Assembly: GCA_001655205.1 (NCBI GenBank)
Contig: LPNZ01007467.1
Span: 1 to 39,963 of the forward strand
DNA from: Lenisia limosa
Lineage: Eukaryota; Protista; Breviatea
Length of the DNA stretch: 39,963 nt
Reading direction: 5' to 3'
The number at the start of each line of letters is the position of its first letter. Position 1 is the first letter of the stretch. Of the stretch, positions 2,250 to 39,445 are shown piece by piece. The notes below the pieces were generated by a model, which was not told where the DNA came from, searched no databases, and saw only the letters and a list, made by a program, of their open reading frames with translations. The translations under genes were made by a program, and so were the position numbers.

Positions 2250-5200
2250 ATAGTTATCAATAATGTACGAGTTTGACCACTCCTGCATGCTCAGTGCCCG
2301 ACCTCCGAACCTCACCTGAGTGTTATTTGAGAAACATCAAACCCTTACATTGGAGATTCGACCTGGAGAGCTCTGGAGAGTTTGCCACCCCTTAAGCGAT
2401 ACAACAAACACATCCGTGAGAATCAGCTGTGCACTTTGCGCTGGAGCCAAATGATGGTCCCACACCTAGGTGTCAAATAATCTTAAGATTGTTCAACTCA
2501 TACAGATATTCTTTATGAATTATGGATATATAAAAAAAAGGAAACAAGCATCCTTTGATAAAACCTAAGTCCTTCTGATTATCGTAGTAATATATCTGCC
2601 CCAAGACATCCATCTGAACACACCACCCCACCTCCATAATGCTGCCGCTTCGTGAGATTGAGCCCCGAGGGTCCATAGAGGGCTTCGGGAACTGTCTGAA
2701 GAAGTCAACCAATACAATTCCATGGTGTAACAAACGTGGTGTCGAAGCCTGCCCATTCGTAGCCATCTGCAAGCACATGCCCGATGGTCTCGTTGTTCGT
2801 GTTCACTCCTGCAAACCCAATAGCCTACAGGTTAAATCCTAAACAAAACGTCACAAACCTGCCATTTGGGGAAAGTTTCTTGGAAGATTTCAAGATAACC
2901 AGCTAGTCTATAGGCAAATCCTGGGGGGAGATTGACCCCCGCCTAAGGGCAATAAGTGGCAAGAAGCAATAAAACTTACCTTAACAATAAGGGTTGGGAG
3001 GTTGGGGTGGGGTGGCTGAGGAGGCAAGTCAGGTCCCATGGTGAGTTTTATCCTATGAAGATCCGCAGCGAAACTGAATCGTAAAAGGAAACAACTCTTG
3101 GAAAACCCCCATGCCTCCCCTTCGAAAATGTGTTTAACCGTCAACTTTTGAGCAATATTTCAGATCCAAATATAATAACACATTCCATTCTCTTCAGTAT
3201 AAAATCGCACCTTTACGCTCAGTCTTACCAACCTTGAAGAGAACACCGCCGCTAGAAGCGTGTTTGGGTCTTCGGAAGATGCAAGAACATGGATTCCCAA
3301 ACGAATGTGTCTGGATAGTGAAGGAAGAACTAAATAGAGATGGCTACCCCCCCCCCCCANNNNNNNNNNNNNNNNNNNNNNNNNNNNNNNNNNNNNNNNN
3401 NNNNNNNNNNNNNNNNNNNNNNNNNNNNNNNNNNNNNNNNNNNNNGTTGTGACTGAATGTCGACGTTCGTGTCGATAGACCGTGTGTTTCCCTATAAAAT
3501 CAACATGCCAATCAAAAGACTGTCTCGGTAATCGAAATATTAATTTGTATTCATCAAAATGAGAGATGCTTTTCATTGCTTCCAGACAATATTCACACCT
3601 CTTGATGACTCCTTGCTTCCAAAGATGCGACACTGCACTGTTTGAGGCGTTGGGGTCGCTCAATCGTGCCACAGGCCCTCCTGTCTGATTAGCCAGTGGT
3701 ATTGAATCCAGTTCGGTTAAATTGTCGTATTAAAGATCACTACTATCGAGGCTATATTGATGATTATTTGATGTTCGCTGCCGACCTGGTACTTGGGCGT
3801 AGAAGAGGTAGTTTCGATCAGAGGACACCACCCAGTTAGGGTGAGGCTTCTGGAAAATCTACAGAGTCAAAGCCGACAGGAAAAGGCCTACAGTCTTTCC
3901 CGTGAAGTTAGGGATGTAGCCTTTGGAGTTGGCCTGAACCAGGTCCAAGAGATGGAGGACGCTGGGGACAATGTCATTGCCTGAGGTCTGGAGGGGGCTG
4001 AAAAGCATTCCATCAGTCTAAACGGTGAGTTCTGAAATAATACGAGAAATAACAAATAATAAAAGGCTGTGTCGGCCATCCACATACAAATCCGTATACA
4101 GAGAAACAATAAAACCCAAAATAGTGTCAATTACAACCTCTTTCGCTGCGTTGAATGCCTGTTCGACATCACTGTTTTGCCTGAAAGATGAAAGAACATA
4201 ATGTTCACGCACTTGAGTCCCTCGGGCACCCAAGCCACAAGAAGGCCGTCTGTCAGATCGGAGTGCTGCCGTCCGCAATGCCCGGTTCGGAAGATGCCTC
4301 CCTCCATGCCCTGTGGGTCAATATTATTGATTATACTTAAAGCACAATCTAAGTTAACGTTCAATCATTAAATATCATATGATATAATACAGTATTCAAC
4401 GTGTATATGAGTAATGGATCAGAGCTAACCTGGCCATGGTCCGATGTTATGATGACGATAGTGGTGTTGAAGTCGACAACCGACAACACCTGGTCTATAT
4501 CTTCATCGACCTAGTTTCGTGAGAAGAGAGCAAGGATTGTTTCAGTCCTAGCAAATGAACCTACCACAGGCATAAGGATCTTGGTGTAAATTTCATTGTC
4601 ACGAGTGGCATGAAGCAGGTTGTCATGCATAAAAACAAAGAACGGCTGGCTCTGACCATGCTTATTTCCATGGTTGTGGTTCTCGGTAGTGAGAAGAATG
4701 AAACACTTTCTTACATTTTACAAATACGTTTACACAGCTCCATAATAATACTTGTCATGAATGTAAAGTGAAACCTCCCACATTAATGAAAGCCTCAGTT
4801 AAGTTGTGCGTGAAGTCGGAGTACAGGTACGCGTCCCACGAAACTGGCTGCGACCATCCGAAGACCTCCCTCCGACTAAGTTGGTGAGATAACGCAGTAA
4901 CGGGGGAAGTGAGTCACTTTCGCCTTCATTCTCAACCCACATGTCCTTCTTTTGGTCGTTGTTGAGTAGATCGTTATTCTTGATGTTGACTTGGAGGCTC
5001 GTTGTGGCTCCGTTTGCCATTTGTATGACGTCAACTCCACGCTGGTTGAACTTGCCTCCATTTCGCAGCTTCAAAGTTAGTTTCAAATCATCATATGGGA
5101 AGCCGTACGAAATGATGCCCCCATTACCACTACATCCACGTCCGTGAAGACAGAGATGTCGTGTTCCTTCTTAGTCAGCGGATGGTCAGGCATCAGATTC

Positions 5201-6765
5201 AGGTTGCTGGCCATTCCAACCCGCCGATACCGTTCACCAAGGTACCAGCCAAGAAGAGGTACCTGGGGGGGGGGGGGGNNNNNNNNNNNNNNNNNNNNNN
5301 NNNNNNNNNNNNNNNNNNNNNNNNNNNNNNNNNNNNNACCATGTTGGCTAGCAACTAGTGCTTCACTCCGATGCGATCTGGGAGATATTTTGAAAGCGAT
5401 CCGATCCGATCCGATCTGAGTCATTCTTTGAGCGATCCAGAAGCTCAGATCGGATTGGAATGCAAAATAAAAACAAAAGAAAAAAAAAGTAAGAAAAGAA
5501 AAAAAAAGTAATGGAAATGGGTATTGATCTTTCCAGTTTCAACTCACACAAAACCAATTTTGGGAAATAGTCTGCTTCTTGTAATAATTTCTGGTGCACT
5601 GACAAAAAAAAACTGTTATAAATAAGCATTATTTTTACTTTAAAGGGAACAAAAATGGAAAATGAAGGGGGTTCATAAATGAGCGATCCAGCGATCCGAC
5701 CTTAACCGATCCGATCCGATCCGATCCGATCTGGAGACAATTTTCATTTTGAGCGATCCGATCCAGAATCGGATCGGAATGGAGTGAAGCACTACTAGCA
5801 ACACACGAAGGTTAAGAACAGCAAAAAAACAAAGCCTCAATCGCTACTAGAAGATAAACATTTGATAGGTTTGAAAAAGCAACATCGCATACCAGAATAA
5901 TACAAGAAAAAACGGGGGGGTCACCAATACGGCCAAGTTTGTGTTTATAACACAGTTCCGTTACTTGTTCAGAGTCTCACCTTTAGAGATCGATCACTGT
6001 CGAAGATGCCAGTTGCCTCCGGTGCGAGGCCAGTCAGCATGCTCGCGTGTGAGGGGCGCGTCCATGGCGCTGAGGTGGAGTGGTTCGGGAACACCAGCGG
6101 CCTCCTGGGGGGTGAGGTGCTGAACCGGCGGCATGGGCTTACGGTGCGGTCTTTTCCCCCTTGAGCCACGAGAGAAGCTTAGGCGTGCGGGCGAAGTTGA
6201 GGTCATTGTACCGCGGCCGTATACTGACTGTCAGAAACAAACGGAGGGCACTTCAGCAGATGTTTACTCACCTGTCGAAATGATCGAAGAACTCAGCACG
6301 GGCGGTGTCAAGACTGATGAGGAGAACTGGGGGTAAGGACGTCCAATCCGTTTCCTACCATTATAGCCCTCAAGAGCTGTATCTGGAGGAGATGCAGGGG
6401 GGACCTTCTTGTCGAACGGAGGGTATGTCAACTGGGTGCATTACATACAAGAACATATAAACCAATACTATCTGTGATTATTATACTATACTATATGATA
6501 TGATATATAGTTTTGAATAGTAGTGCAATAATTCCTCGATTTGATTAAAGCCAACCAAGTTGAGACACTCACTCCTTGCCGGACTGAACCTCGAACGACA
6601 CTGACAACTAACCTGTAAAATAAGCGTTTACATTGGTCAAGGTCAAATGACTACAGATAGAGACCGATCCCTTCTTACATCCGACACTTCTTCGTTCATA
6701 TTTGCAATGGGGCAAGTCTGCAAACAAGTTATAAGGAACAAAAGCGCTCCTAAGAACAACAACAT
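2250..6765 (-). CDS. Secreted alkaline-phosphatase-superfamily, sulfatase-like hydrolase (Thr nucleophile) with a C-terminal extension; 3' end approximate
   Basis: Spliced translation: signal MLLFLGALLFLITCLQT (ATG 6765); YNVLLISLDTARA; RTPKLLSWL; VFPNHSTSAPWTRPSHASMLTGLAPEATGI (Thr codon 6059-6061); QPFFVFMHDNLLH; VDEDIDQVLSVVDFNTTIVIITSDHGQ (about 4430-4510); DIVPSVLHLLDL...PNFTG. These motifs are in the canonical order of the sulfatase/NPP fold. Exons below about 3800 are less certain. Confidence 0.75.
5356..5794. mobile_element. Non-autonomous hAT-type DNA transposon (MITE), 439 bp, intronic
   Basis: Perfect 14-bp TIR: TAGTGCTTCACTCC at 5356-5369 and GGAGTGAAGCACTA at 5781-5794. Perfect 8-bp TSD CTAGCAAC at 5348-5355 and 5795-5802. 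Subterminal (CCGAT)n/GCGATCC arrays at both ends, an A-rich core and no credible ORF. An 8-bp TSD with a TAG terminus is characteristic of hAT elements. Confidence 0.88.
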
Positions 6766-6829: not shown

Positions 6830-8732
6830 AAACGCAGCCCGTCAAACCATGAGACTGATGGCGGGTGAACAAGCCAGACCGAGGCCCTCAACCGATCTCC
6901 CCGTCCAGTTGGCAACCTGCAGTCAGAGATGCAATGTCCATAGAAATGAGAGAAAAAAAAAGGTTTAAGCCGTCCTCACAATCACGATTGATAAAAGCAT
7001 ATATTACTGTAAAAACAATTAAATGTCGCGAACTCAACTTTCTCTCCCCTACGCATGAAAAGAATTTTGAATAAGGACATATCGATAGATGATCAGTGTA
7101 CATACGATATGCATATAATATTATATGATGTGTGTATAATAGCGAAGTGTGCCCTCCTGTAATATGCACATGCATACCTGATGCATCTGGCTGATGGCTG
7201 GGTGGGCGGACGCTTTCAATGACCCAACATGGCACGGCGGCGATGATTTCTGAAGGTCAGCTCTCAAAACCAGAAAATCAATGCTATTCTCACATAATAC
7301 AGGAAACACATTCAGTTGCCCTTATCAAAACAACGTAAATGCATATCGACGATATAGTCTTAAAAAGTTAGAAATGTATTGATACCTAGCATATGTATAT
7401 GATGTGGTTGTATGATACACTTTGATAGGTATATCATAATATTAGATCCTATAATATTCCGCCTGGCTTCTATTAACATAAAAACCATACTATTGAATAT
7501 TCTACTGTCTCACCAGAATCTTGGGATAGTGTGGGATAATCCTGGAGTATTTTGCGGCGACCTGTTGGTCCTTGAGTCCTTGGCGGTCCACATCCTGCGG
7601 TCCAGTCGGCTGGTAGTGTCAGACTTATAGCTCACTCTGGGACCCCCGAAATCTCCCCTTGACTCGGAGTGTATAGGGTATCTAGAGCTTGTCCCAAAAA
7701 GACTGAAATTCGAGAAAAAGATTCCCAGTCTTTTTCGGACCGTTCTGGTCAAGGATCATGAGGGAACCTACCAAATACAGGGTGTCAAAAGGGTCTGTTT
7801 TGAAGTTGCCCCTCCAGAGCGTTCCGTTATATGACCACGTATCGTCAGAATCGAAGACCAAGTCGTCCCACTCGGGGTTATGGAAGGCAACCTGTGAGCG
7901 AGGCCGGGCTGGGATGGTGATTGTGTTAGCCTTGGACACCAGGGGGAACTTGAGCTTCTTCCGCCGCCGTATTTTGTGCCTGTTTCTGATGGCAGCATTG
8001 TCGATTTGGTCATCATTGGGCTCAGAAGGCACGTCATCCGGTACGTCGGCTGGTTCGGCTAGAGGCTCAGAAATGTCAGCGGGAGAAGATGGCGATTTAC
8101 TGGGGACGGGAGACGAAGCGCTTGGAGGCTCAATTCGGTCTTTTTCCGACTCTTTGGAGGTCACTGGCTCAGGTGATTTGTTTTCTTCGACTGGCTTGTC
8201 TGCTGAGGAAGAGGTGGCAAACTTGTCAGAGTACTCATCTACGCGAGGTTGTGGCTGGGGGGGGGGGGGGGNNNNNNNNNNNNNNNNNNNNNNNNNNNNN
8301 NNNNNNNNNNNNNNNNNNNNNNNNNNNNNNNNNNNNNNNNNNNNNNNNNNNNNNNNNNNTTAGTGACACCATCTTCCTATCAGTATCACTGGTTGATTTG
8401 AAGACCCCGTCTTCCTGACACTAATTGTAGAAATATCATGTAGACTGAAAAAAAACCAATAGAAGTCAAAAGAGAACACACTCCATCTCAAAGATTTCCC
8501 TCGTTTATTCTTTTCCGGTGTTTTTAATACATACTTGCTGGTCAACCGTCCATGGTGACGACGACTGCGCGAGGGTAACCTGCTGATCTTTTAAAATGGG
8601 TCTGGTGAGTCAGCAATGGAACAGGCAATAGGGCAAATATCACCTTATAAACAGCAAAAATGTGACAAAGAATAGTGTTACTGCAAAGAAGACAAAGAAG
8701 CGGAGTACTGGAAGCCTGTTTCCAACAATCAT
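6830..8732 (-). CDS. Hypothetical type II membrane protein (signal anchor, S/P/E/D-rich stem, luminal domain); 3' end approximate
   Basis: ATG 8732 gives MIVGNRLPVLRFFVFFAVTLFFVTFLLFIR|LPSRSRRHHGRLTSK. A long exon (about 8256-7785) encodes the low-complexity stem PQPRVDEYSDKF...EPPSASSPVPSKSPSSPADISEP and then KFPLVSKANTITIP...WSYNGTLWRGNFKTDPF. Downstream exons are ambiguous. Confidence 0.5.
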
Positions 8733-9058
8733 TGTCAAAAGGCCGCTAATATGTCTCTTTTTTTTTGCATAGTTTGTGTATTTCTTTAACTTAGTTGATT
8801 AATACTTATCGTTATTCAAATTGTTCAAATCTCGTGCTTCTAAAAAAACATTGCTGGATGGATAAATTTTTAATATTAAATAATTCAAGGAAAGGTACTG
8901 TTCAATGAACTTGCCTTTTTCGACATATCCTCGTGTCCCTTAACTATTTAAAAAAATTTTCATTGCCTTTCTTTTATTTATTAATAATTTGGATTTTGCA
9001 ACTCTTATCCCTCGTTTACCTTATAAGTTATATTTATCCAGTTACCTAAATTATTACG

Positions 9059-12297
<3,239 letters not shown>

Positions 12298-22800: not shown

Positions 22801-23223
22801 GAAGACTCCCTAGAGAACCGCGCTGGCTCATGTGACATAATATTTCACATAGTTATGCATATCATTTGACATATTATATGATATATGTAGTATTGACGTT
22901 GTCAGTCCAAAAACAATACCTTGTGAAAGAAACCAACGAAATCTGTTTTTACATAAACTCAGGCAAATTCTTGATTGCCACTCTGACTCCCAAGATACAG
23001 GCAACTACCCTGAAGTGCGGAAACTCCTTTCAGCAAAGCCAGTGCATGAAGACTCTTCAAGTTCCTCATTCATATTCTCAAATTTCATTGAAAACTGACC
23101 TAATTGAAAACTGATTACAAGAAAACCACTTTTTGCTTCAAAGATGCAGCCAGAGTAGAAATAAAACCAGAATATATCAACATAGGGCAGTCTTGTGACC
23201 GAAGAAAAATAAGAAAGTGTAAA

Positions 23224-26041
23224 TTAGCGGCGGCGGTGGGTGGTGTGGAGGAGCTCGTGAGCCTTGTCTGAGAAAAGCTTGCCTTCCATGTGCTCATTGT
23301 AGACCTGGAAGCTAAGTGCAAGTAGAGAGGATGGTGAAAGAAGCAAGCAGCAGGCTGAAGCTTACGGTGATGAGATCGGGGTTGAGGAGAGAGGTACGAG
23401 AAGTGGAGTCTCTGTCGATGGCACGAAGGGCCTCCATACGGTCAGCAATGGTGGAAGAAGACTCGGGGGTAGGCATGCCGCCACCACCAACGCAGCCTCC
23501 AGGGCAGGCCTGAGGGGTTAACCGATAGGAGCGAGTGCAGTATGAATGGAAGGAAGCTCACCATCATTTCGATGAAGTGGTAATCTTGGAGTCCGTCCTT
23601 TGCGCGGAGAACAAGCTTCTGAAGAACGGAAGCGCCGGAAGCAACAGCAACGCGGAGCTGAAGTGTCAGTATATTACTCTCACTCGAGCGGAGAGTTGCC
23701 GATATTTTGAAGATCCTTCCTTACCTCCTTGCCGGCGATTTCAACGACGGCTTCCTTGACACCGTCAAGATGGCCGTTGCGGACCTCAGTGATCTCAACA
23801 TCCTTAAGCTCCTCGCCTAAAACGTCAGCTACACTGCAACTTTCAAGCCCTCAAAGAAGACACTATTACCTCCGAACCCCTCGCAGCCCACCGGTCATGA
23901 TGACGTTAGCGGAACGGAGAGCGGCCTCCATGACACCTCCAGAGGTACCGAAGATGGCGCCGGAGCCAGAGCCGTTGGCAAGAGGGTTGTCGTACTCGGA
24001 CTCCTCAAGGTCGGCGTAGTTGATGCGGTCCATCTTGATCATGGCGGCAATCTCGCGGGCAGTCAGAACGTGGTCGGTCTCGGGAATGGTCTCTGGGGGG
24101 GGGGGGGGNNNNNNNNNNNNNNNNNNNNNNNNNNNNNNNNNNNNNNNNNNNNNNNNNNNNNNNNNNNNNNNNNNNNNNNNNNNNNNNNNNNNNNNNNNNN
24201 NNNNNNNNNNNNNNNNNNNNNNNNNNNNNNNNNNNNNNNNNNNNNNNNNNNNNCCGGTAGAGGACTTCATGGTGAGTTCTTCACGCTCGGACTCGGCCTT
24301 CTTGGCAGTGCAAGGAGCAATGAACTGAGAAGTGAGACGGAGGCGTTAACATGGGAATGCCTACGGTGATGTCAATGTCTTCGGGGTTGGCCTCGATCTT
24401 GTCGGCAAAGTAGGTCTTGGTGAGAGACGCGAGCATGCCTTGAGGGGACTTGCAGCTAGAGGAGTTATAACAAACCAATGTGACGCTTGACGAACCTGGA
24501 GAGCTGGGGAAGAACCTCGGGGTGGAGCTTCTCGACAAGGTTGACCCAGGCGGGGCAGCAGGAAGTGAACATGGGGAAGGGGCCGCCGTTCTGGATGCGA
24601 CGGACGAGTTCGGAAGCCTCCTCAACAGTGGTGAAATCGGCACCGAAGTTGACATCGAAGACGTAGTCGAAGCCGAGCTGGCGGAGAGCAGCAACAAGCT
24701 TGCCGGGGGAGAGGGCACCAGAGGGGAGACCGAAGGCCTCGCAGACGGCAACACGGACGGAGGGTGCGGTGGTGGCAACCATAACCTTGCGCTTCTCCTA
24801 CAAGATGAGAAAGGTTACAAGGAACAGAGTATAAAGCAATTCACCTCCCTCTAACGCCAGGCATGGAAGTCATGTTGTTACGGACGGACTCCACATGGGG
24901 GTTGGCACGGATGGCGGCAGTGGGGCAGTAGAGAGAGCACTGGCCACACTCAATGCAGCGAGTTTTGTCGAGGGGCTTGCCGTCGGGGGTAGAGATGTGC
25001 TTGTTCATCCACTCAGCAGCGTCTTCGAGGACGGAAAGGTCCTGGATCTCGGCGCAGACACGGACGCAGCGGCCGCAACGGATGCACTTGTGGTCCTTGC
25101 GGGAAAGGGCGGAGGTGATGTCGTCCTGGTTCTTCTCGTTCTCGCGGAGGTTGGCACGAGACTGGGGGGACACCTGAAAGAGTCAAGGAAGCTCTACAAT
25201 GTCGTGTGACAAGTGTAATGAAAGAGCCCCCCCCCCCTCACAGCAGCGGTGACGTTGTACTTGTGGAAGAGGTCCTGGAGCTCACAAGAGCCGTTGGCGG
25301 GGCATGAGGCGCAGTCCTGATGAGTGGGGTAGTCTGAACGAATCTTGGCGAGGCGCTTCTGGACTGAAGAGATCAGTGCATGTTGGGCGAAAGAAGTACA
25401 AACCGGCATCGTTAACGCGGCTGGAGTTAGTCACAATCTCAGAACCATCAATAAGGGCGTTGGTGCAAGCCTTGCGGAGAGTTCCATTGACCTCAACCTG
25501 GCAAACACGGCAAGAACCCTCAACAGAAAGGTTGGGGTGGTAGCAGAGAACAGGAACATAGACACCTGACCAAAGTGAGAAGGAATAGCATAGAACAAAA
25601 AAATGTTCCAGAACAATGGTGTGAAGACGGCTAGAACCGCACTATTTGACCTTATATGACTATAAAAACGCAATTAAAAGATAAATATTCGATTGGGGCT
25701 TGAATATGCGCCACAAACCGGCATCACGGCAAGCGCTGACGATAGACTTGTGGTTTCCACCCTCAATGGTGTGTTTCTGACCGTTGATAGTCACATTGTA
25801 GGTCTGAGGAGCCTCGGCTAAAGATTAAGCAATCTAGACTGAACAGAAATTCAGACATGAATGCATTCCGCCTGATTTATCCTTCATAAAGTCACATTTA
25901 CTATTTACTGAACAGCCCAGACCATCTCATACTTTTCTTGAACTGAGGAACGTAGGTAGCACAGGCACGGGGAAGAAGGCGAGCACTGGTAGCAATAACA
26001 GGCGAAACACGCTGAGAAAGAGTTCTAAAAGCGGCCAGCAT
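23224..26041 (-). CDS. hydA: [FeFe]-hydrogenase, monomeric M3 type (2Fe-2S, His-ligated 4Fe-4S, 2x4Fe-4S, H-cluster, small-subunit tail), with a mitochondrial/MRO-type presequence
   Basis: ATG 26041 gives MLAAFRTLSQRVSPVIATSARLLPRACATY. F-clusters: LCYHPNLSVEGSCRVC...AC; HQDCASCPANGSC; CIRCGRCVRVC; CIECGQCSLYCP. H-domain: APSVR, FGADFTTVEEASELVRR, L1 FTSCCPAW, SSCKSPQ, L2 FIAPCTAKKAE, GAIFGTSGGVMEAA, L3 EMM|ACPGGCVGGGG. It ends AHELLHTTHRRR* (TAA 23224-23226). The N gap lies in a phase-consistent intron. Confidence 0.96.
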
Positions 26042-26130
26042 CTAAAGCAATGACAGCAGAAATGTGAATTCCAAGCCAAAAAGTGGTTTGCTGTATTTAT
26101 GTGTATATTTAAGACGCCCTCATACTTTTA

Positions 26131-28160
26131 ATGCAGAACAAGCAGTCAAAAAAGCAATTTGAAAAAATTGAAAAAAAATGTCTTAAGTATTTCGAAAATT
26201 ATCGACAAAATATCGATGATTATGTAGAACCAACTTTCTTCGCGCCCTCTTGCCCCACTCACTGCCACAACAACCCAACAACAACGTGCCAACAAAAAAA
26301 CAACAAAAAAACGTGTTTCCCTTTCTCTTCCCTGTACACCCCCAAACAACGTGGCCAACGATCCAAACAGAAGCACCTACATCACACAGAGAACAACATA
26401 CTGCAATACTGTAATACTGCTCTTGGGAAATGTAACAATTCCCAAGCCGAACGAAAATAGGGTTGAACAGGTGAACTCGTCGTTTCAAGCAAGACGCTGG
26501 GTGTCTTATTTGCAATGCCAAGGATATTCCCCGTCCCGATTCCGAGGAGAGCGATCCGAAAATGCTCATCTTCAATTGCGAGGTAACGATAATTCAATAT
26601 TTCAACATTTACTAACAGTTATGCGGGGCAACTCTCTTTCTTCCATTTTGTTTTTGCCTTGAGTGTGTTTGCGGTTTCCTTTCCCACCCCCACCTTCGAG
26701 TCAACAGCCAAAGTATGGAGGATGTGACGATGATATGTACGTTTCATTAGTTACTATTTAAGCAACCCATTCAAATTCCACTTTATTTTTCCTTATATCT
26801 AACGAGAATTGAGAAAATCAGACACGATTTAAATGTTTAATTATTTTTGAATATGTCAACCGTTTTTTAACGGTTTCAATTCAATCAACTTCTTGTTCTT
26901 TCTTCACACATTAGCTGTTTGCCTGGTTCTCATTGCTCTCGGTTTGGGTGAACATTTGGCGCAGTTTATGGAAATCCTTACGAACTGGAGGAATTCAGGT
27001 ATGTTTTCACGCCAAGTGGTTAAGCTTCCCTCTCTGGTTACAATTCAGGTTGTTGTCAGCACTTTCATTCTGGCAACGTTCTCAATGAGCTGTCTGTATA
27101 TTATTCTATTGGTGCACCTCACCACTGCGCGGCTTTGGCTGTTGTATTTTGTGGCGACCGCGGCGTACATGGCCTATTGCAACACCCAGCACGAAAGCAG
27201 GGTAGGGGGTTCATTGGTTTTTATTGAATTGAATGATACTTCACCACCGGATGTGATAGTTTTTCAAAGCAACAAACAGGTACAAAATTATCCACACAAC
27301 TCTCACAACCCTTCAGAAACAGGTGACGTCAGGTCTCCTTTCAATGCTGTCACTACTCATTCTCTACGACTCCTCGCTGTCCCATCTTGTCCGGCGCTAT
27401 GTTACGGATGTCGCCCTCTATGTCTTGGATACTGCGTCTTTTTTGACCTCATCTCTGGCGAATATGGTGTTACAGGCAGGACAGTCACTTTATCGAACCA
27501 TCACAAGGTACCTCCCGTTTCTCCATTCTTCTTGTCTTTTTGTATTGAGTGAAGCCTCTGATTGCTTGTCTGTCTGTTGGGCTATCCTGTTGGAGTATTT
27601 CAGCGAGTTTATGGTATAATAAGGCGTAAATTGTTTATTTCTGTTTGATGTTGTTTTAAGCCCTGTTTCCCTGTGCAAGTTTTGGATATCGCATAGTTCT
27701 CTGAGAAAAGGTTGTGTGTCTGGTCGAGAGATAAATATTATACGTGGAAATTCATAACCATTTGTAAACAGCAAACCACAGGTTTTGGGAAACAATTCAT
27801 CACACACAAAAAAAACATTTAAATAACAAGAAACAAAAAAGAAGACTATCTATTCATCAAGATGTACCAAAAGAGTACCCTCATGCTCTCCAACCAGAGA
27901 CTTGGTTCGCAATCGCCCAGAATCTATAGTTTCAGTTTTATATTCTTTGAAGGCTTCAACCAGATTGTTTTTATTTCCCATTTCACCCGCACTCACTTCC
28001 GGTTGGCGGTGCGAGAAGACCCTCAACATCAAACACCACACTTGCAGCAGTCTATGGGATCAGCGCTGATATTGATGTTTGCTTACATCGATTGGCTTCA
28101 TTGGTGGTGATTGCAGAGGGGGACATGAGGCACTTCTCTCATCAACCTGGTTGTAAGGAA
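26131..28160 (+). CDS. Hypothetical membrane protein; exon structure partly unresolved
   Basis: The phase-consistent exons LFAWFSLLSVWVNIWRSLWKSLRTGGIQ|VVVSTFILATFSMSCLYIILLVHLTTARLWLLYFVATAAYMAYC are hydrophobic. An upstream Cys-containing segment reads GCLICNAKDIPRPDSEESDPKMLIFNCE. Start and end are tentative. Confidence 0.35.
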
Positions 28161-33695: not shown

Positions 33696-36375
33696 ATGGA
33701 GATTGAAAACGAGAGCGGACCGGTTTCTCTTCATATCAAATGGGGGAAGAAAACGTTTGATATTGCGACAGATGCGAGTCAAACGGTCGCTGTCTTGAAG
33801 GGTTTGTTTTTAATTTTAAATAATTTGTAATTTACTTCAATAGATCAGCTCTTTACTCTTACTGGTGTTCCGCAACCTAGGCAAAAGCTCACTGCCAAGG
33901 GTATCACTGGTCTTCTTAAGAATGATCAAACGATTTCTACCCTTAATTTGAACGAGGTTTGTGAAATGGTGACTTTCCTTCCTTATCCCATTCAAGAAAA
34001 CCAAGATCCTCTTGATTGGCTCCGCTGAAGTTCTCAAGGCTGCCCCCAGTGAAACTGAGTATGAAAAATAGAAGGAGTGTTAATTTGGTATCTTAAGAGC
34101 CGACGTTGATATTTCGTTACATGACCATTTCAGGATGAAGAAGTTCATTGATACTCCTTCCAACAACGTCAAAGAGGTTGGCTGGCTACTATACTTTCAA
34201 ATGAGTGTCAAGAATTTTTATTTCTTTAAAAGTACCCCCCCCCCCCCNNNNNNNNNNNNNNNNNNNNNNNNNNNNNNNNNNNNNNNNNNNNNNNNNNNNN
34301 NNNNNNNNNNNNNNNNNNNNNNNNNNNGTTAGGTGTTGAAGGTGAAATTTTTCAACGTATTTAAATAAGCACTGGTACCACTATTCATATCCCCAGGCAG
34401 TGTTCACTCCAGGCATGCGTAACCTTGGCAACACTTGCTACCTCAACGCCACAATTCAGGCGCTTAACGCCATTCCTGAGCTACACGAGGCTCTCTTGAC
34501 GTGGGGTTTTTTTATTGGTGCTTAGTTTTTTGTCACTCAATCATTTCTCTTATTACTATCTAACCTGATCCATTTCAGCTACAAGGAAAATGGAGCCCGT
34601 GCCCATGACCCGAATCACAACATCACAGTGGCCTCGCGCGAGCTCTTCAAAACCCTCAAGAAGAACGTCTCCAAGGAGGTTCTTCCTTCCACTTTGATCC
34701 AAGTTTGCTGTCATTATTTACAATCCATTTTTTTTCCTGCATTTCCCTGAAATTATACTGTAGCAATTCCACCGTGCCCACCCCGCCTTTGCGGAGAAAA
34801 ATGAAAAAGGAGTTCCTATGCAGCAGGTTTGACGAGTTCATGCTATATGTAGTGTTGTCCTTTTTATTTTAATTTTGTGGTTTCATGTATTCACTCATTT
34901 AGGATGCGGATGAGTTTCTTATTCTCCTTCTTGCCGCCTTCAGAGCCAAGTTGAAGCAAGGAGACCGTAACCTCATTGAATCTCTTTTCCACGGTTTGCA
35001 CATCCCGAACGAAATGTGGTGCTTTTGTAGAAGATTCCGCGTAACATTTCAGGAAAGCTTGATTTTGAAGCGAAATGTGCAGAGGAAGGTGGCGAGACCA
35101 TCACGGAAGCGAAGTCCTTTGAGAAGCTCCAGGTGGGTATCCAAGATGAGCTTATTTGACGAACATGGTGAATTTACCCGTTAAGGTATTCATTGAGAAA
35201 GACATCCAGGTTATCGAAGCAGGGCTTGAGAAAGGCTTCAAGGGACAAATGGAGAGAAAGTGGGGGTTTTTTCCGCGTTTGTTCTGAATGCTGAAGAGTT
35301 GACTGAAATATCTAAAATTGCACAGGTCCGACACATTAGGACGTGATGCAGTCTTCAACACAACGCAACACATTTCAGACCTTCCTCCTTTCGTAGTCGT
35401 ACAGGTTGGATGGCAATGTCGTTAAGTATTGTATCTAGGGCTTCACTTCGGTTCTCTCTGGAGTCAAATTACTTTGTTGTATTTACTCCATCAGTTTACT
35501 CGATTCCAATGGAAGACAAAGGAAAATGTTCGTGCCAAAATTCTCAGAGTGAGAGGGTGTTAGGGCTCTTTTATCAAATAAATATGGATGGAAAATTCTG
35601 TCAGTCCATCCGGCTTTACGCTTCTTAGAATGTGAAGTACGGCCAAACGCTGGATTTGCAGTACCTTTGTAACTCTGAGGTCAAGGCGGCTACCGAGGCG
35701 AACAGAGCAAAACTGGTTAGTGAAAACTGTTGCAAACAGCTTTACTTGATCCATACTTTACTTTTGTAGAGAGAATTTGAAGATGAGCGTTTGAAGCTTG
35801 AGGAAGAGAGCAAACCTGCCAAGAGCAAACCCAGCCTTCCTTCTGTAAGGAAGGGGTCCTTTCTTATTGCCTTGAAAGAATGTTGCAATTGGAGATTTGG
35901 GTTTGAATGAAATAACCAAGTAGCCTTCTTCCCCCGACTTCCGCGAAAGAATGACAGGACGCTATCGTTTGGCATCATGTGTGACGCACACTGGAGTGTC
36001 GGCTGAAGGTGGACATTATATTGGTTGGTGGGTTTTTTTTTTGTGTCTTTTGCTTCAAGAGGACACGAGTTAACGTATTAGGATGGGCGCGTGCTGCTAC
36101 TAAGGGTGGAAAGCCGGACAAAACAATGAAAGTTTGTTGAACGTATCTTTGGAACCAGGCCTAACAAAATAGGATGAGCAGAACTCAGAGAAGAACCCGG
36201 CCTGGCTGAAGTTTGATGACGCTAAGGTGGGCTTTGTGATGACGTGGCAGTCTTTTGATATCTTGATATCATTGGTTAGGTGTCGGAAGTTGACTCGAAC
36301 GCTGTGCTTGCCTGTTCCGGTGGCGCGGAGACCCCCATCACTTACATCCTTGTGTACAAGGCTGAGGCTTTCTAG
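33696..36375 (+). CDS. USP14: Ubiquitin carboxyl-terminal hydrolase 14/UBP6 (N-terminal UBL plus USP domain)
   Basis: UBL: IKWGKK...QLFTLTGVPQPRQKL. Cys box GMRNLGNTCYLNATIQAL; QQ|DADEF; His box HTGVSAEGGHYIGW; WLKFDD; ends ILVYKAEAF* (TAG 36373-36375). Confidence 0.93.
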
Positions 36376-36700: not shown

Positions 36701-36901
36701 GATGCTTGTAGGAATGGCTTAATCGGAACGGAAGCGGAAAGTTCAGTTAATTTCCCATAAAACTCAGGATTTTTTCGTAACAAAGTAACAATCAAAGAAG
36801 TTATATAGTATATTAACTATAAAAAAAATAGGAAAAACAAAAGTGAAGAGAATCGCTTGCTTCCTGCAAATGTGTTATTGGTGAATCGCAACATCACTAG
36901 C

Positions 36902-39445
36902 ATGGAGTCGCAGGAAGGCGATTACGCTGAAGACTATGATGTAGATGAGGATAGCGAGCAGGTTCAGCTTCAACTGCTTCTGAGTTTACTGAAAGGTGGC
37001 GATTTTCGGCACTTTGGGAAGAAGCTCGCTTTCAACCACCTTCCTAATCTAGAATGGCTAGATTTGCGTAAAAGTGGTTTAATTGAGCTGCCAGAAGGGC
37101 TTAGCGACTTAAGCAGCCTCGAGGTATGTTCGGTGAATGTTGGGTTTATTGACCTGAATCATGTTCACCAAAAATCATTCTACTTGATTTGGAACTTTTG
37201 TCTTTTTTTGTTAATACCCTGAATTGGGTGTCATCTATTTTTCTTGACACTTCCTATGACTATTGTTGTTGGGCATATCACCCCCCACCCCCGCATCGAA
37301 ATTTCCTTCGTTTTACTCCACCACGTCAGCGATTACCCCCCTTCCCAGCGCTTGAGTCTTAATGGTAATGAATTTGAGTCTGTTGCCGCATCTGAGCTGC
37401 CCTTGGTACAAAATATCGACGTTCGCCACAACAAACTCAGCCTCAGCGCTCTGTAGGTTTCCTGCACTGGTTTCATGTTTTTTTTGTTTTTGTTACTAAC
37501 CATGCTTTTGTTTCACAACCGCGGTCAACTAGAGGTCAACTAAGAATCAAATCTCTTCTAATGATGCAGTAATTCGCTGCTGACGCTGCCGTCGTTGACT
37601 CGTTTGGACGCCTCGTCTAACCCCTTGGTTCCGAAGGATGCCCCAACTCAGCCACTGTCTGCCCAAAACCCATACCTAGCCCATAACTCACCATTCAGCA
37701 TTCCTCCATCAACCGCCAAGTTGCAGTCTCTGGTTCTACGCCGCAGTTATCTTCAACAGTTTCCGGGGTCACTGGCTCTTTCAATTGCCACGTCACTCAC
37801 CCATCTTGACATCTCTGACAACTCCATCACCGCACTCCCACCCCAAAGTTGGTAGTTTCCTTTGTTGGTCGCCTTTAACTTTGCAGTTAAGCGACTTACG
37901 AAGCTGCGACTGCTCAACGTTTCGAGGAACCAGCTTTTCAAAGTTTGCTTGGGGCGGTATCCAAATAGAAACAATGATGTACTTTGTTGACGGTCCAGCT
38001 TTCTGACGGTATCTGCGAACTGACAGAGTTGGAGCACCTCATCTGTAGCCAGTGTGAACTGACCAGCTTACCATTGGATCTTCCTGATCTAAAGAAACTC
38101 ATTGTGAGCGGGAGGGGTGTTGAATGTTTAAGGCTAGGAGAGGAATTACGTTGTTTCCGCAGTCTTTACTCTTCAGGATTTTGATATTTCGGACAACAAC
38201 CTGAATGGAGTGCCGGGTGAGATCCAAGACATGACACAATTAGTCAGACTCAATTTGGCCAATAATGCTATCAGTACCATTCCACCTGCCTTTCGAAAGC
38301 TCAAGGTTGGCAGGCACTGAGTCAATCTACTCATACTCTATACGATAGTATATTGTTTTGTATTATATGTACATAATATATTGTATTAGATACTATAATA
38401 TAATATGCAGTGTATACGTATGCATCTTTTGTAAATCAAAATACTCTCTTTACATTAAACGACTGTTTAGCGACTGGAGAGTTTGAATATGAGTCGAAAT
38501 AAGCTGGCCATGGTTTCGGGACTTTTGTGCTCCCTGACCAGTTTGAGAAGGTATATGTCTTTATAATAATTTTTAATTTCTTTAATGACTATATGTGTTA
38601 ATGAAATTGAGCCGTTAATCATGTTTAGGCTTCTTTTGAATGGAAATGAGATCACCAATCGAGGAATTCCGCGCGCCATTTCCCGTCTTACTCGCCTTTC
38701 TTATTTGGGCCTCTCAAAAAACTTGATCACCAAATTTCCAGACCTGGTAGGCAGAATATGAATACACCAGCATCTGACCTTTAGGTGGAACCCATGCCTT
38801 CTCTTGCCACGCTTGATTTGAGTTATAACGTCTTGACTGATGCGCCTTCGACTGACCCTTTTCCGAGTCTCAAAGTTGGCTCATGACCTCATGGGCATAA
38901 TAACAGATGATACTCTTTATGGATAGTGTATCATCTTTTGTGGACTATCAGGAAGCCAGTCTTCATGTATTCGTTTGAGCCAACTGAGACGAGAAAAAAA
39001 TTTATACTCTTTTCGCAGGTCTTGAATTTGGACCATACGACACTTCCACCACGGTTTGCACGCGAGGCGAGCAGGCGTGCGCAAATGATTGTGGAACGCA
39101 GGGCTGAGGTCGAAAAACTTGTCCACAAGTGAGAGGACGAGGGGAGAACTAGTTTTATACCTGTTTTTTTGATAGTATCTAGATGTATACAATTTGTATT
39201 AACCCTATATTTTCACTCACTTTATTAGTGCACTTGAAGGTCGACTAACGTTCTTGAGGAATAGGGCTCGTGGAATGTAAGCCATACGTATAAGAACCGA
39301 AGATATTTTAATTTCTATTTTTACTATCGCCTTGATAAAGACCCAAATATTTGTTGACTTGTTAGGAAAGGAGAGCCCTTGCCGAATCAACTGGCATCCT
39401 TGAAGTTTGTGGATTGGGATTTTTCTATAGCTTAGGTGCACTTGA
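36902..39445 (+). CDS. Leucine-rich-repeat protein (typical LxxLxLxxN type), acidic N-terminus
   Basis: ATG 36902 gives MESQEGDYAEDYDVDED. Repeats include LPNLEWLDLRKSGLIELPEGLSDLSSLE, LSLNGNEF, IDVRHNKL, LTHLDISDNSITALP, LLNVSRNQL, FDISDNNLNGVPGEIQDMTQLVRLNLANNAISTIP and LSYLGLSKNLITKFP. The end is tentative. Confidence 0.82.

Follow-up and report, generated by a model that had tools for sequence, protein, structure and literature searches.

A transcribed, intron-split gene for a complete M3-type [FeFe]-hydrogenase with a putative mitochondrial presequence in the breviate Lenisia limosa

Contig LPNZ01007467.1 of the Lenisia limosa assembly GCA_001655205.1 (39,963 nucleotides; this whole stretch is hereafter referred to as the window) carries on its minus strand, between positions 26041 and 23224, a gene for an [FeFe]-hydrogenase. 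The ATG is located at 26041 and the stop codon at 23226-23224, and the coding region is divided into 13 exons with a total length of 1890 nt (629 codons for 629 amino acid residues, with a single terminal stop), preceded by one exon of the 5′-untranslated region (5′UTR) (Table 1). Among the stop-to-stop open frames, the pieces of the hydrogenase lie in three alternating frames. The exon model was built with the contigs of one polyA metatranscriptome run (X2) and one DNA-like run (X1), both from a single study of 2016, which were aligned to positions 23000-26300 of the window, the exon cuts being shifted as the alignment tool states. Two RNA contigs from X2 (1076 and 924 nt) span the whole coding region, and they contain a total of 13 splice joints, 12 within the coding region and one within the 5′UTR, none of which is present in the DNA run X1. 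All 13 introns are of the GT..AG type on the gene strand (CT..AC on the plus strand). The preliminary description of this locus, made from the sequence alone, had proposed an intron-split gene at this position, and the RNA contigs bear this out. It had also assigned an N-terminal leader, MLAAFRTLSQRVSPVIATSARLLPRAC, to the first exon; the leader itself was correctly recognized, but the first coding exon turned out to be the second exon of the transcript. The ATG is formed by the first three bases of this second exon, where the 84-nt intron of the 5′UTR ends exactly. This hydrogenase gene is intact; its 13 GT-AG introns are removed by splicing, and the leader is part of the transcript. For the analysis of reading frame, composition and leader and for local blastp, we used the joined coding sequence, composed of the window coordinates plus two bases (CG) that fall within an assembly gap.

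This gap, a run of Ns inside intron 8, does not break the hydrogenase gene. One RNA contig from X2 connects positions 24093 and 24254, a single letter intervening, and a DNA contig from X1 reaches 106 nt into the run of Ns, the last letters on the minus strand being CCGG-CG, followed by GTGAGCATTG.., a canonical donor. On the other side of the gap, a polyC-AG acceptor is found at 24094/24093. Since the Ns are flanked by this canonical donor and acceptor, the gap consists of intron except for two exonic bases (CG). From the estimated number of Ns, intron 8 would measure about 161 nt; if the two read ends do not overlap, its length is about 120 nt or more. The reading frame is continuous over the gap, from ..ELTMKSSTG to ETIPETDHVLTAREIA.. 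(..TMKSSTG/ETIPETDHVL..), and no coding sequence is missing, because only about seven residues lie between the aligned gap flanks in the bacterial homologues. The depth of DNA reads is equal on either side. The break in the assembly is explained by the preceding homopolymer. Five of the six N gaps in the window start right after a G or C homopolymer of 12-15 nt (gap stretches 3347-3445, 5265-5337, 8257-8359, 24095-24253 and 34235-34327), and shorter homopolymers of 10-12 nt were bridged by the assembly, for instance C11 at 25227-25237 in intron 4 of the hydrogenase gene.

Table 1. Exons, selected introns and untranslated regions of the hydrogenase gene, in window coordinates.
Feature	Position	Strand	Content and evidence
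5′UTR exon	26126..26145	-	at least 20 nt; the RNA contig begins here; joint 26041/26126 (CT..AC)
5′UTR intron	26042..26125	-	84 nt (GTATGA..TTTAG); AG acceptor abuts the start codon
Exon 1 (coding)	25933..26041	-	leader MLAAFRTLSQRVSPVIATSARLLPRACATYVPQFKK, no acidic residue; exon extends to ..ATYVPQFKK
Exon 2	25719..25817	-	end of leader (T-EAPQT), then start of 2Fe-2S domain (YNVTINGQ..)
Exon 3	25404..25565	-	2Fe-2S ferredoxin-like Fer2_4 with its four Cys; Pfam 1.9e-05 and 3.7e-05
Exon 4	25242..25363	-	His-ligated 4Fe-4S (H..C..C.....C); NADH-G_4Fe-4S_3, 1.5e-09
Exon 5	24856..25173	-	two 4Fe-4S ferredoxin motifs (CIRCGRCVRVC, CIECGQCSLYCP); Fer4_7, 4.3e-11
Exon 6	24496..24797	-	first part of H-domain, L1 FTSCCPAW; Fe_hyd_lg_C, 9.4e-37; PDB 4e-34
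Exon 7	24365..24455	-	H-domain (CKSPQGMLASLTKTYFADK..)
Exon 8	24254..24324	-	L2 FIAPCTAKKAE; last two bases (CG) hidden in the gap
Intron 8	24093..24253	-	contains assembly gap 24109-24253; donor GTGAGC from the loose end of the DNA contig; acceptor polyC-AG
Exon 9	23892..24092	-	H-domain (ETIPETDHVLTAREIA..GGVMEAALR..)
Exon 10	23725..23816	-	H-domain; RNA joints, bacterial alignment
Exon 11	23562..23657	-	H-domain to ..YHFIEMM
Exon 12	23366..23509	-	L3 ACPGGCVGGGGMP, start of small-subunit-like tail; PDB 4.6e-06
Exon 13, coding part	23224..23304	-	Fe_hyd_SSU tail (4.2e-06, 27.1 bits); stop codon 23226-23224
3′UTR	23166..23223	-	to the end of the RNA contig; adapter letters beyond

The Pfam domains follow each other along the exons in the order Fer2_4, NADH-G_4Fe-4S_3, two Fer4, Fe_hyd_lg_C and Fe_hyd_SSU, the last being recognized above the cut-off of 24 bits in exon 13 and with 14.5 bits in exon 12. 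This layout, in which a 2Fe-2S domain is followed by a His-ligated 4Fe-4S domain, a pair of 4Fe-4S domains, the catalytic H-domain and a small-subunit-like tail, is that of the M3 enzymes represented by CpI of Clostridium pasteurianum. The ligands of the accessory clusters appear in the model as four Cys, then one His plus three Cys, and then eight Cys, so that all Cys and His residues for the four accessory Fe-S clusters are present, as are those for the H-cluster. The L1 motif, FTSCCPAW, retains both its Cys, the cluster ligand and the one that serves proton transfer. The L2 motif, APCTAKKAE (24292-24324), keeps the Cys, Lys and Glu and aligns with IMPCTAKKYE (7Q4V) and MPCTAKKFE (7P5H), and L3, EMMACPGGCVGGGGMP, which extends across exons 11 and 12, keeps the Met and both Cys ligands. 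Two residues near the H-cluster are unusual. The conserved Met of L2 beside the cluster is replaced by Ala, and the part of L3 in exon 12 (23470-23509) reads GGGGMP, with Met at the position where Gln is usual. The substituted L2 residue is not a ligand, so the membership in group A M3 stands. In a set of 79 bacterial relatives, the L2 triplet is MPC in 62, TPC in 8, APC in 4 and VPC in one, and L3 of the 64 relatives in which it is readable is GGGQP in 60 and GGGEP in 4. By these counts, APC is a natural minority state and gives no argument against activity. The protein is, as far as can be read from its sequence, a complete 629-residue [FeFe]-hydrogenase of group A M3 (CpI-type), predicted to produce H2. 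The complete M3-type enzyme of the preliminary description is thereby borne out by the Pfam series, by L1-L3 and by the full-length colinearity with bacterial M3 enzymes described below. Two other members of the wider family were considered and rejected: a NARF/Nar1 protein, since the protein has the complete N-terminal part of an M3 enzyme as well as L1-L3 and its best matches among solved structures are true hydrogenases, and a sensory enzyme of the HydS type, since neither PAS nor any other sensory domain was found.

No bacterial counterpart exists for residues 1-43 (MLAAFRTLSQRVSPVIATSARLLPRACATYVPQFKKTEAPQTY): the alignments to 25 bacterial M3 proteins start at residue 44 or 45 of the model. 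Among the first 37 residues are 4 Arg, 2 Lys, 7 Ser or Thr and 6 Ala, and neither Asp nor Glu, so that the net charge is +6; for a sequence composed like the remainder of the protein, an acid-free run of 37 residues would arise by chance with a probability of about 0.005. As a helix, the leader has a hydrophobic moment that peaks at 0.57 in an 18-residue window and 0.65 in an 11-residue window, as compared with 95th percentiles of 0.41 and 0.52, respectively, for the rest of the protein. The Arg/Ser/Ala-rich and acid-free character noted in the preliminary description is thus confirmed for a true N-terminal extension with an amphipathic signal. One RNA contig extends from the 5′UTR exon through exon 1 into exon 2, and the leader is therefore contained in the mRNA. 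Upstream of the ATG at 26041 there is an in-frame stop with no ATG between, and the next Met of the model is located far downstream, inside the ferredoxin-like domains. With no alternative start, what is translated from this mRNA includes the leader. Two Arg residues, R21 and R25 (..SARLLPRACAT..), are candidates for the Arg at -2 or -3 of a processing-peptidase site. In all these respects the leader resembles a classical matrix presequence, and import into an organelle is predicted on this ground. The presequences of Trichomonas are much shorter.

For comparison with known hydrogenases, a scan with exon 6, using one genome per prokaryotic species, gave 507 relatives. Against solved [FeFe]-hydrogenases, exon 6 gave E-values from 4e-34 to 8e-33 (among them HDCR HydA2, bifurcating HydA1 and CpI). 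The best bacterial matches belong to Thermotogota, with 63-66% identity in exon 6, and their full-length frames (583-602 residues) are colinear with the exons from the first residues to the C-termini; by local blastp against the fetched bacterial loci, the identity to these M3 enzymes is 43-47.5% over 587-601 residues. Two of the Thermotogota loci, L002 and L014 (Fervidobacterium islandicum), agree with the protist protein in the entire Pfam architecture. These stand-alone M3 enzymes (loci L001-L017) differ in that they have neither leader nor introns and carry MPC and GGGQP, and their rank in similarity is no proof of the donor lineage. In the Fervidobacterium islandicum locus, a gene with radical-SAM and BATS domains (4789-6216), similar to HydG/HydE, follows at a distance of 0.7 kb downstream from the hydrogenase.

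The prototype of the monomeric, ferredoxin-dependent M3 enzymes, CpI (PDB 3C8Y/4XDC), shares the five-part layout and the cluster ligands (8e-33 with exon 6); it is a bacterial, cytoplasmic enzyme, whereas the protist protein has the 43-residue leader, introns in its gene, Ala in L2 and Met in L3. The same M3 layout is found in HydA1 of the electron-bifurcating HydABC complex (PDB 8A6T), to which exon 6 is equally close (2.3e-33), and the match to T. maritima HydA (7P5H) is weaker (3.8e-24). The M3 layout fits either type. Neighbours of the HydB/C type were not seen near the inspected bacterial relatives L002 and L014, and synteny in a eukaryote cannot link partner genes. Among eukaryotes, the hydrogenosomal hydrogenases of Trichomonas vaginalis and of other protists with mitochondrion-related organelles (MROs), Stygiella among them, operate within the same module of pyruvate:ferredoxin oxidoreductase (PFO), ferredoxin, hydrogenase, maturases and the complex I subunits of 51 and 24 kDa (PMC4989108), but belong to eukaryotic lineages other than the breviates. 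The closest parallel is given by the MRO-targeted HYDA of the anaerobic breviates Lenisia limosa and Pygsuia biforma, which likewise carry an N-terminal mitochondrial targeting sequence and are accompanied by targeted maturases, PFO, ferredoxin and NuoE/F. Very likely, the gene described herein is one of the published breviate genes for MRO-targeted HYDA.

MRO-targeted HYDA of breviates was reportedly described by Stairs et al. in 2014 and by Hamann et al. in 2016. According to a preprint (bioRxiv 10.64898/2026.01.29.702055), all breviates encode MRO-targeted maturases, most of them, including L. limosa and all but strain BLO, have MRO-targeted HYDA with NUOE/NUOF, and cytosolic hydrogenases are also present. 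The MROs of L. limosa couple ATP synthesis to the production of H2, which is passed to its Arcobacter epibiont, and a confurcating hydrogenase has been proposed for this organism (PMC12453579). In Table 2 of HydDB, a group A1 hydrogenase of Lenisia is entered with H2 evolution 'confirmed experimentally' (PMC5037454). The hydrogenosomal module as a whole is textbook knowledge for protists with MROs (PMC4989108). The H2-producing, mitochondrion-related organelle suggested in the preliminary description agrees with the breviate literature (bioRxiv 10.64898/2026.01.29.702055; PMC12453579; PMC5037454 Table 2). Organellar [FeFe]-hydrogenases are a signature of hydrogen-producing mitochondria, and the breviates are a key lineage for the adaptation of mitochondria to anoxia. 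For L. limosa, the organelle, the targeted HYDA, the maturases and the transfer of H2 to Arcobacter have already been published; both the observation and its interpretation were right, and the gene is of a known kind in an organism where this kind is already described. What is added here is modest: the transcript-verified exon model of one paralogue with the assembly gap resolved as an in-frame intron, the 5′UTR intron abutting the start codon, and the two unusual residues near the H-cluster, a pair that is the only loose thread.

We consider it probable that this nuclear protist gene encodes an M3 [FeFe]-hydrogenase with a cleavable presequence of the mitochondrial type, about 25-43 residues in length, and that the enzyme takes part in organellar H2 production. 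The precursor would be imported into the mitochondrion-related organelle, where HydE/F/G, encoded elsewhere in the genome, would install the 2Fe subcluster. Organellar PFO would reduce ferredoxin, from which electrons would enter the chain of 2Fe-2S and 4Fe-4S clusters and be passed to the H-cluster for the reduction of protons to H2. The NuoE/NuoF flavoprotein module may take part, with co-oxidation of NADH, as the literature proposes for breviates. Several points weigh against this proposal. Import is predicted from the composition of the leader, and with the L2 change from Met to Ala and the L3 change from Gln to Met, the activity could differ from that of CpI. In addition, no NuoE/F-like neighbours were found within 3 kb of L002 or L014, and the confurcating variant of the mechanism thus finds no support by homology in these neighbourhoods.

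An enzyme that is functional but acts in the cytosol, or in cytosol and organelle alike, the extension being an inefficient import signal, would fit a leader whose cleavage motif is not clear-cut and the cytosolic hydrogenases that breviates also possess (bioRxiv 10.64898/2026.01.29.702055). We regard this as unlikely in view of the 43-residue extension, with its acid-free stretch, positive net charge and high amphipathic moment, of the lack of an alternative start codon, and of the MRO-targeted HYDA that the same preprint reports for the lineage. The residues near the H-cluster lead to a different possibility, that the gene is a diverged paralogue with another role (an altered catalytic bias, uptake or sensing of H2, or an obligate NuoE/F partnership) rather than the main ferredoxin-dependent producer of H2. 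APC and GGGGMP are indeed present, and GGGMP occurs in none of the 64 bacterial relatives with readable L3. On the other hand, the Cys for proton transfer in TSCCP, Lys and Glu in L2, Met and the two Cys in L3 and all ligands of the accessory clusters are kept, no sensory domain such as PAS is attached, APC and TPC occur naturally in 4 and 8, respectively, of the 79 closely related group A enzymes from bacteria, and the gene is transcribed and shows a strong codon bias, all of which make such a divergence quite unlikely. A related speculation, to which we likewise give little credence, is that the gene belongs to a set of three or more paralogous hydrogenases targeted to the organelle and is functionally specialized through Ala in L2 and Met in L3, for example for the confurcation of NADH and ferredoxin or for a catalytic bias at the low H2 pressure kept by epibiotic H2 consumers.

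The contig could also have come from another organism of the culture, a contaminating eukaryote or bacterium, as the source was a mixed culture and the library is labelled metatranscriptomic. A bacterial contaminant was rejected, because 13 spliceosomal introns are removed in the polyA RNA, and an intron-split Hsp70 gene and a leucine-rich-repeat gene lie on the same scaffold, and the DNA depth is uniform (34-41); an origin outside L. limosa is therefore extremely unlikely. It is most likely an intron-rich nuclear gene of an anaerobic protist, the breviate Lenisia limosa, an attribution with which the metadata of the runs (2016, one study, polyA metatranscriptome) agree, and for this gene organellar H2 production remains the reading that we prefer.

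The third codon positions of the hydrogenase gene are strongly biased, with C at 0.52 and A at 0.04 (GC at third positions, 0.69; effective number of codons, 33.6), and its introns are 45% GC. From the C-ending codons, the preliminary description had suggested high expression. The bias is real, but it is shared by the intron-split gene for cytosolic Hsp70 at about 9050-12294 (plus strand) of the same scaffold, where C at third positions is up to 0.49; a bias of this kind would fit high expression in this genome, and the depths of the contigs cannot rank expression. The Hsp70 gene shows Pfam HSP70 on three exons, a tail of GGMP repeats and the EEVD end. In the remainder of the window, no signal for HydE/F/G, PFO, ferredoxin or NuoE/F came up among the 20 longest open frames, which is a limited and non-exhaustive test.

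Some minor observations were made on other sequences. A 761-nt contig of X1 (depth 22) matches the hydrogenase gene only at 24434-24462 and 24528-24557, with 236 other letters between, and represents a paralogous hydrogenase gene from the same sample. Upstream of the hydrogenase gene, on the opposite strand, a stop-free frame of 233 codons (26851-27549, plus strand) is rich in hydrophobic stretches and has no Pfam match; it may be an exon for a membrane protein. The leucine-rich-repeat gene (LRR_8, LRR_1) is composed of several exons at about 36809-37852 on the plus strand.

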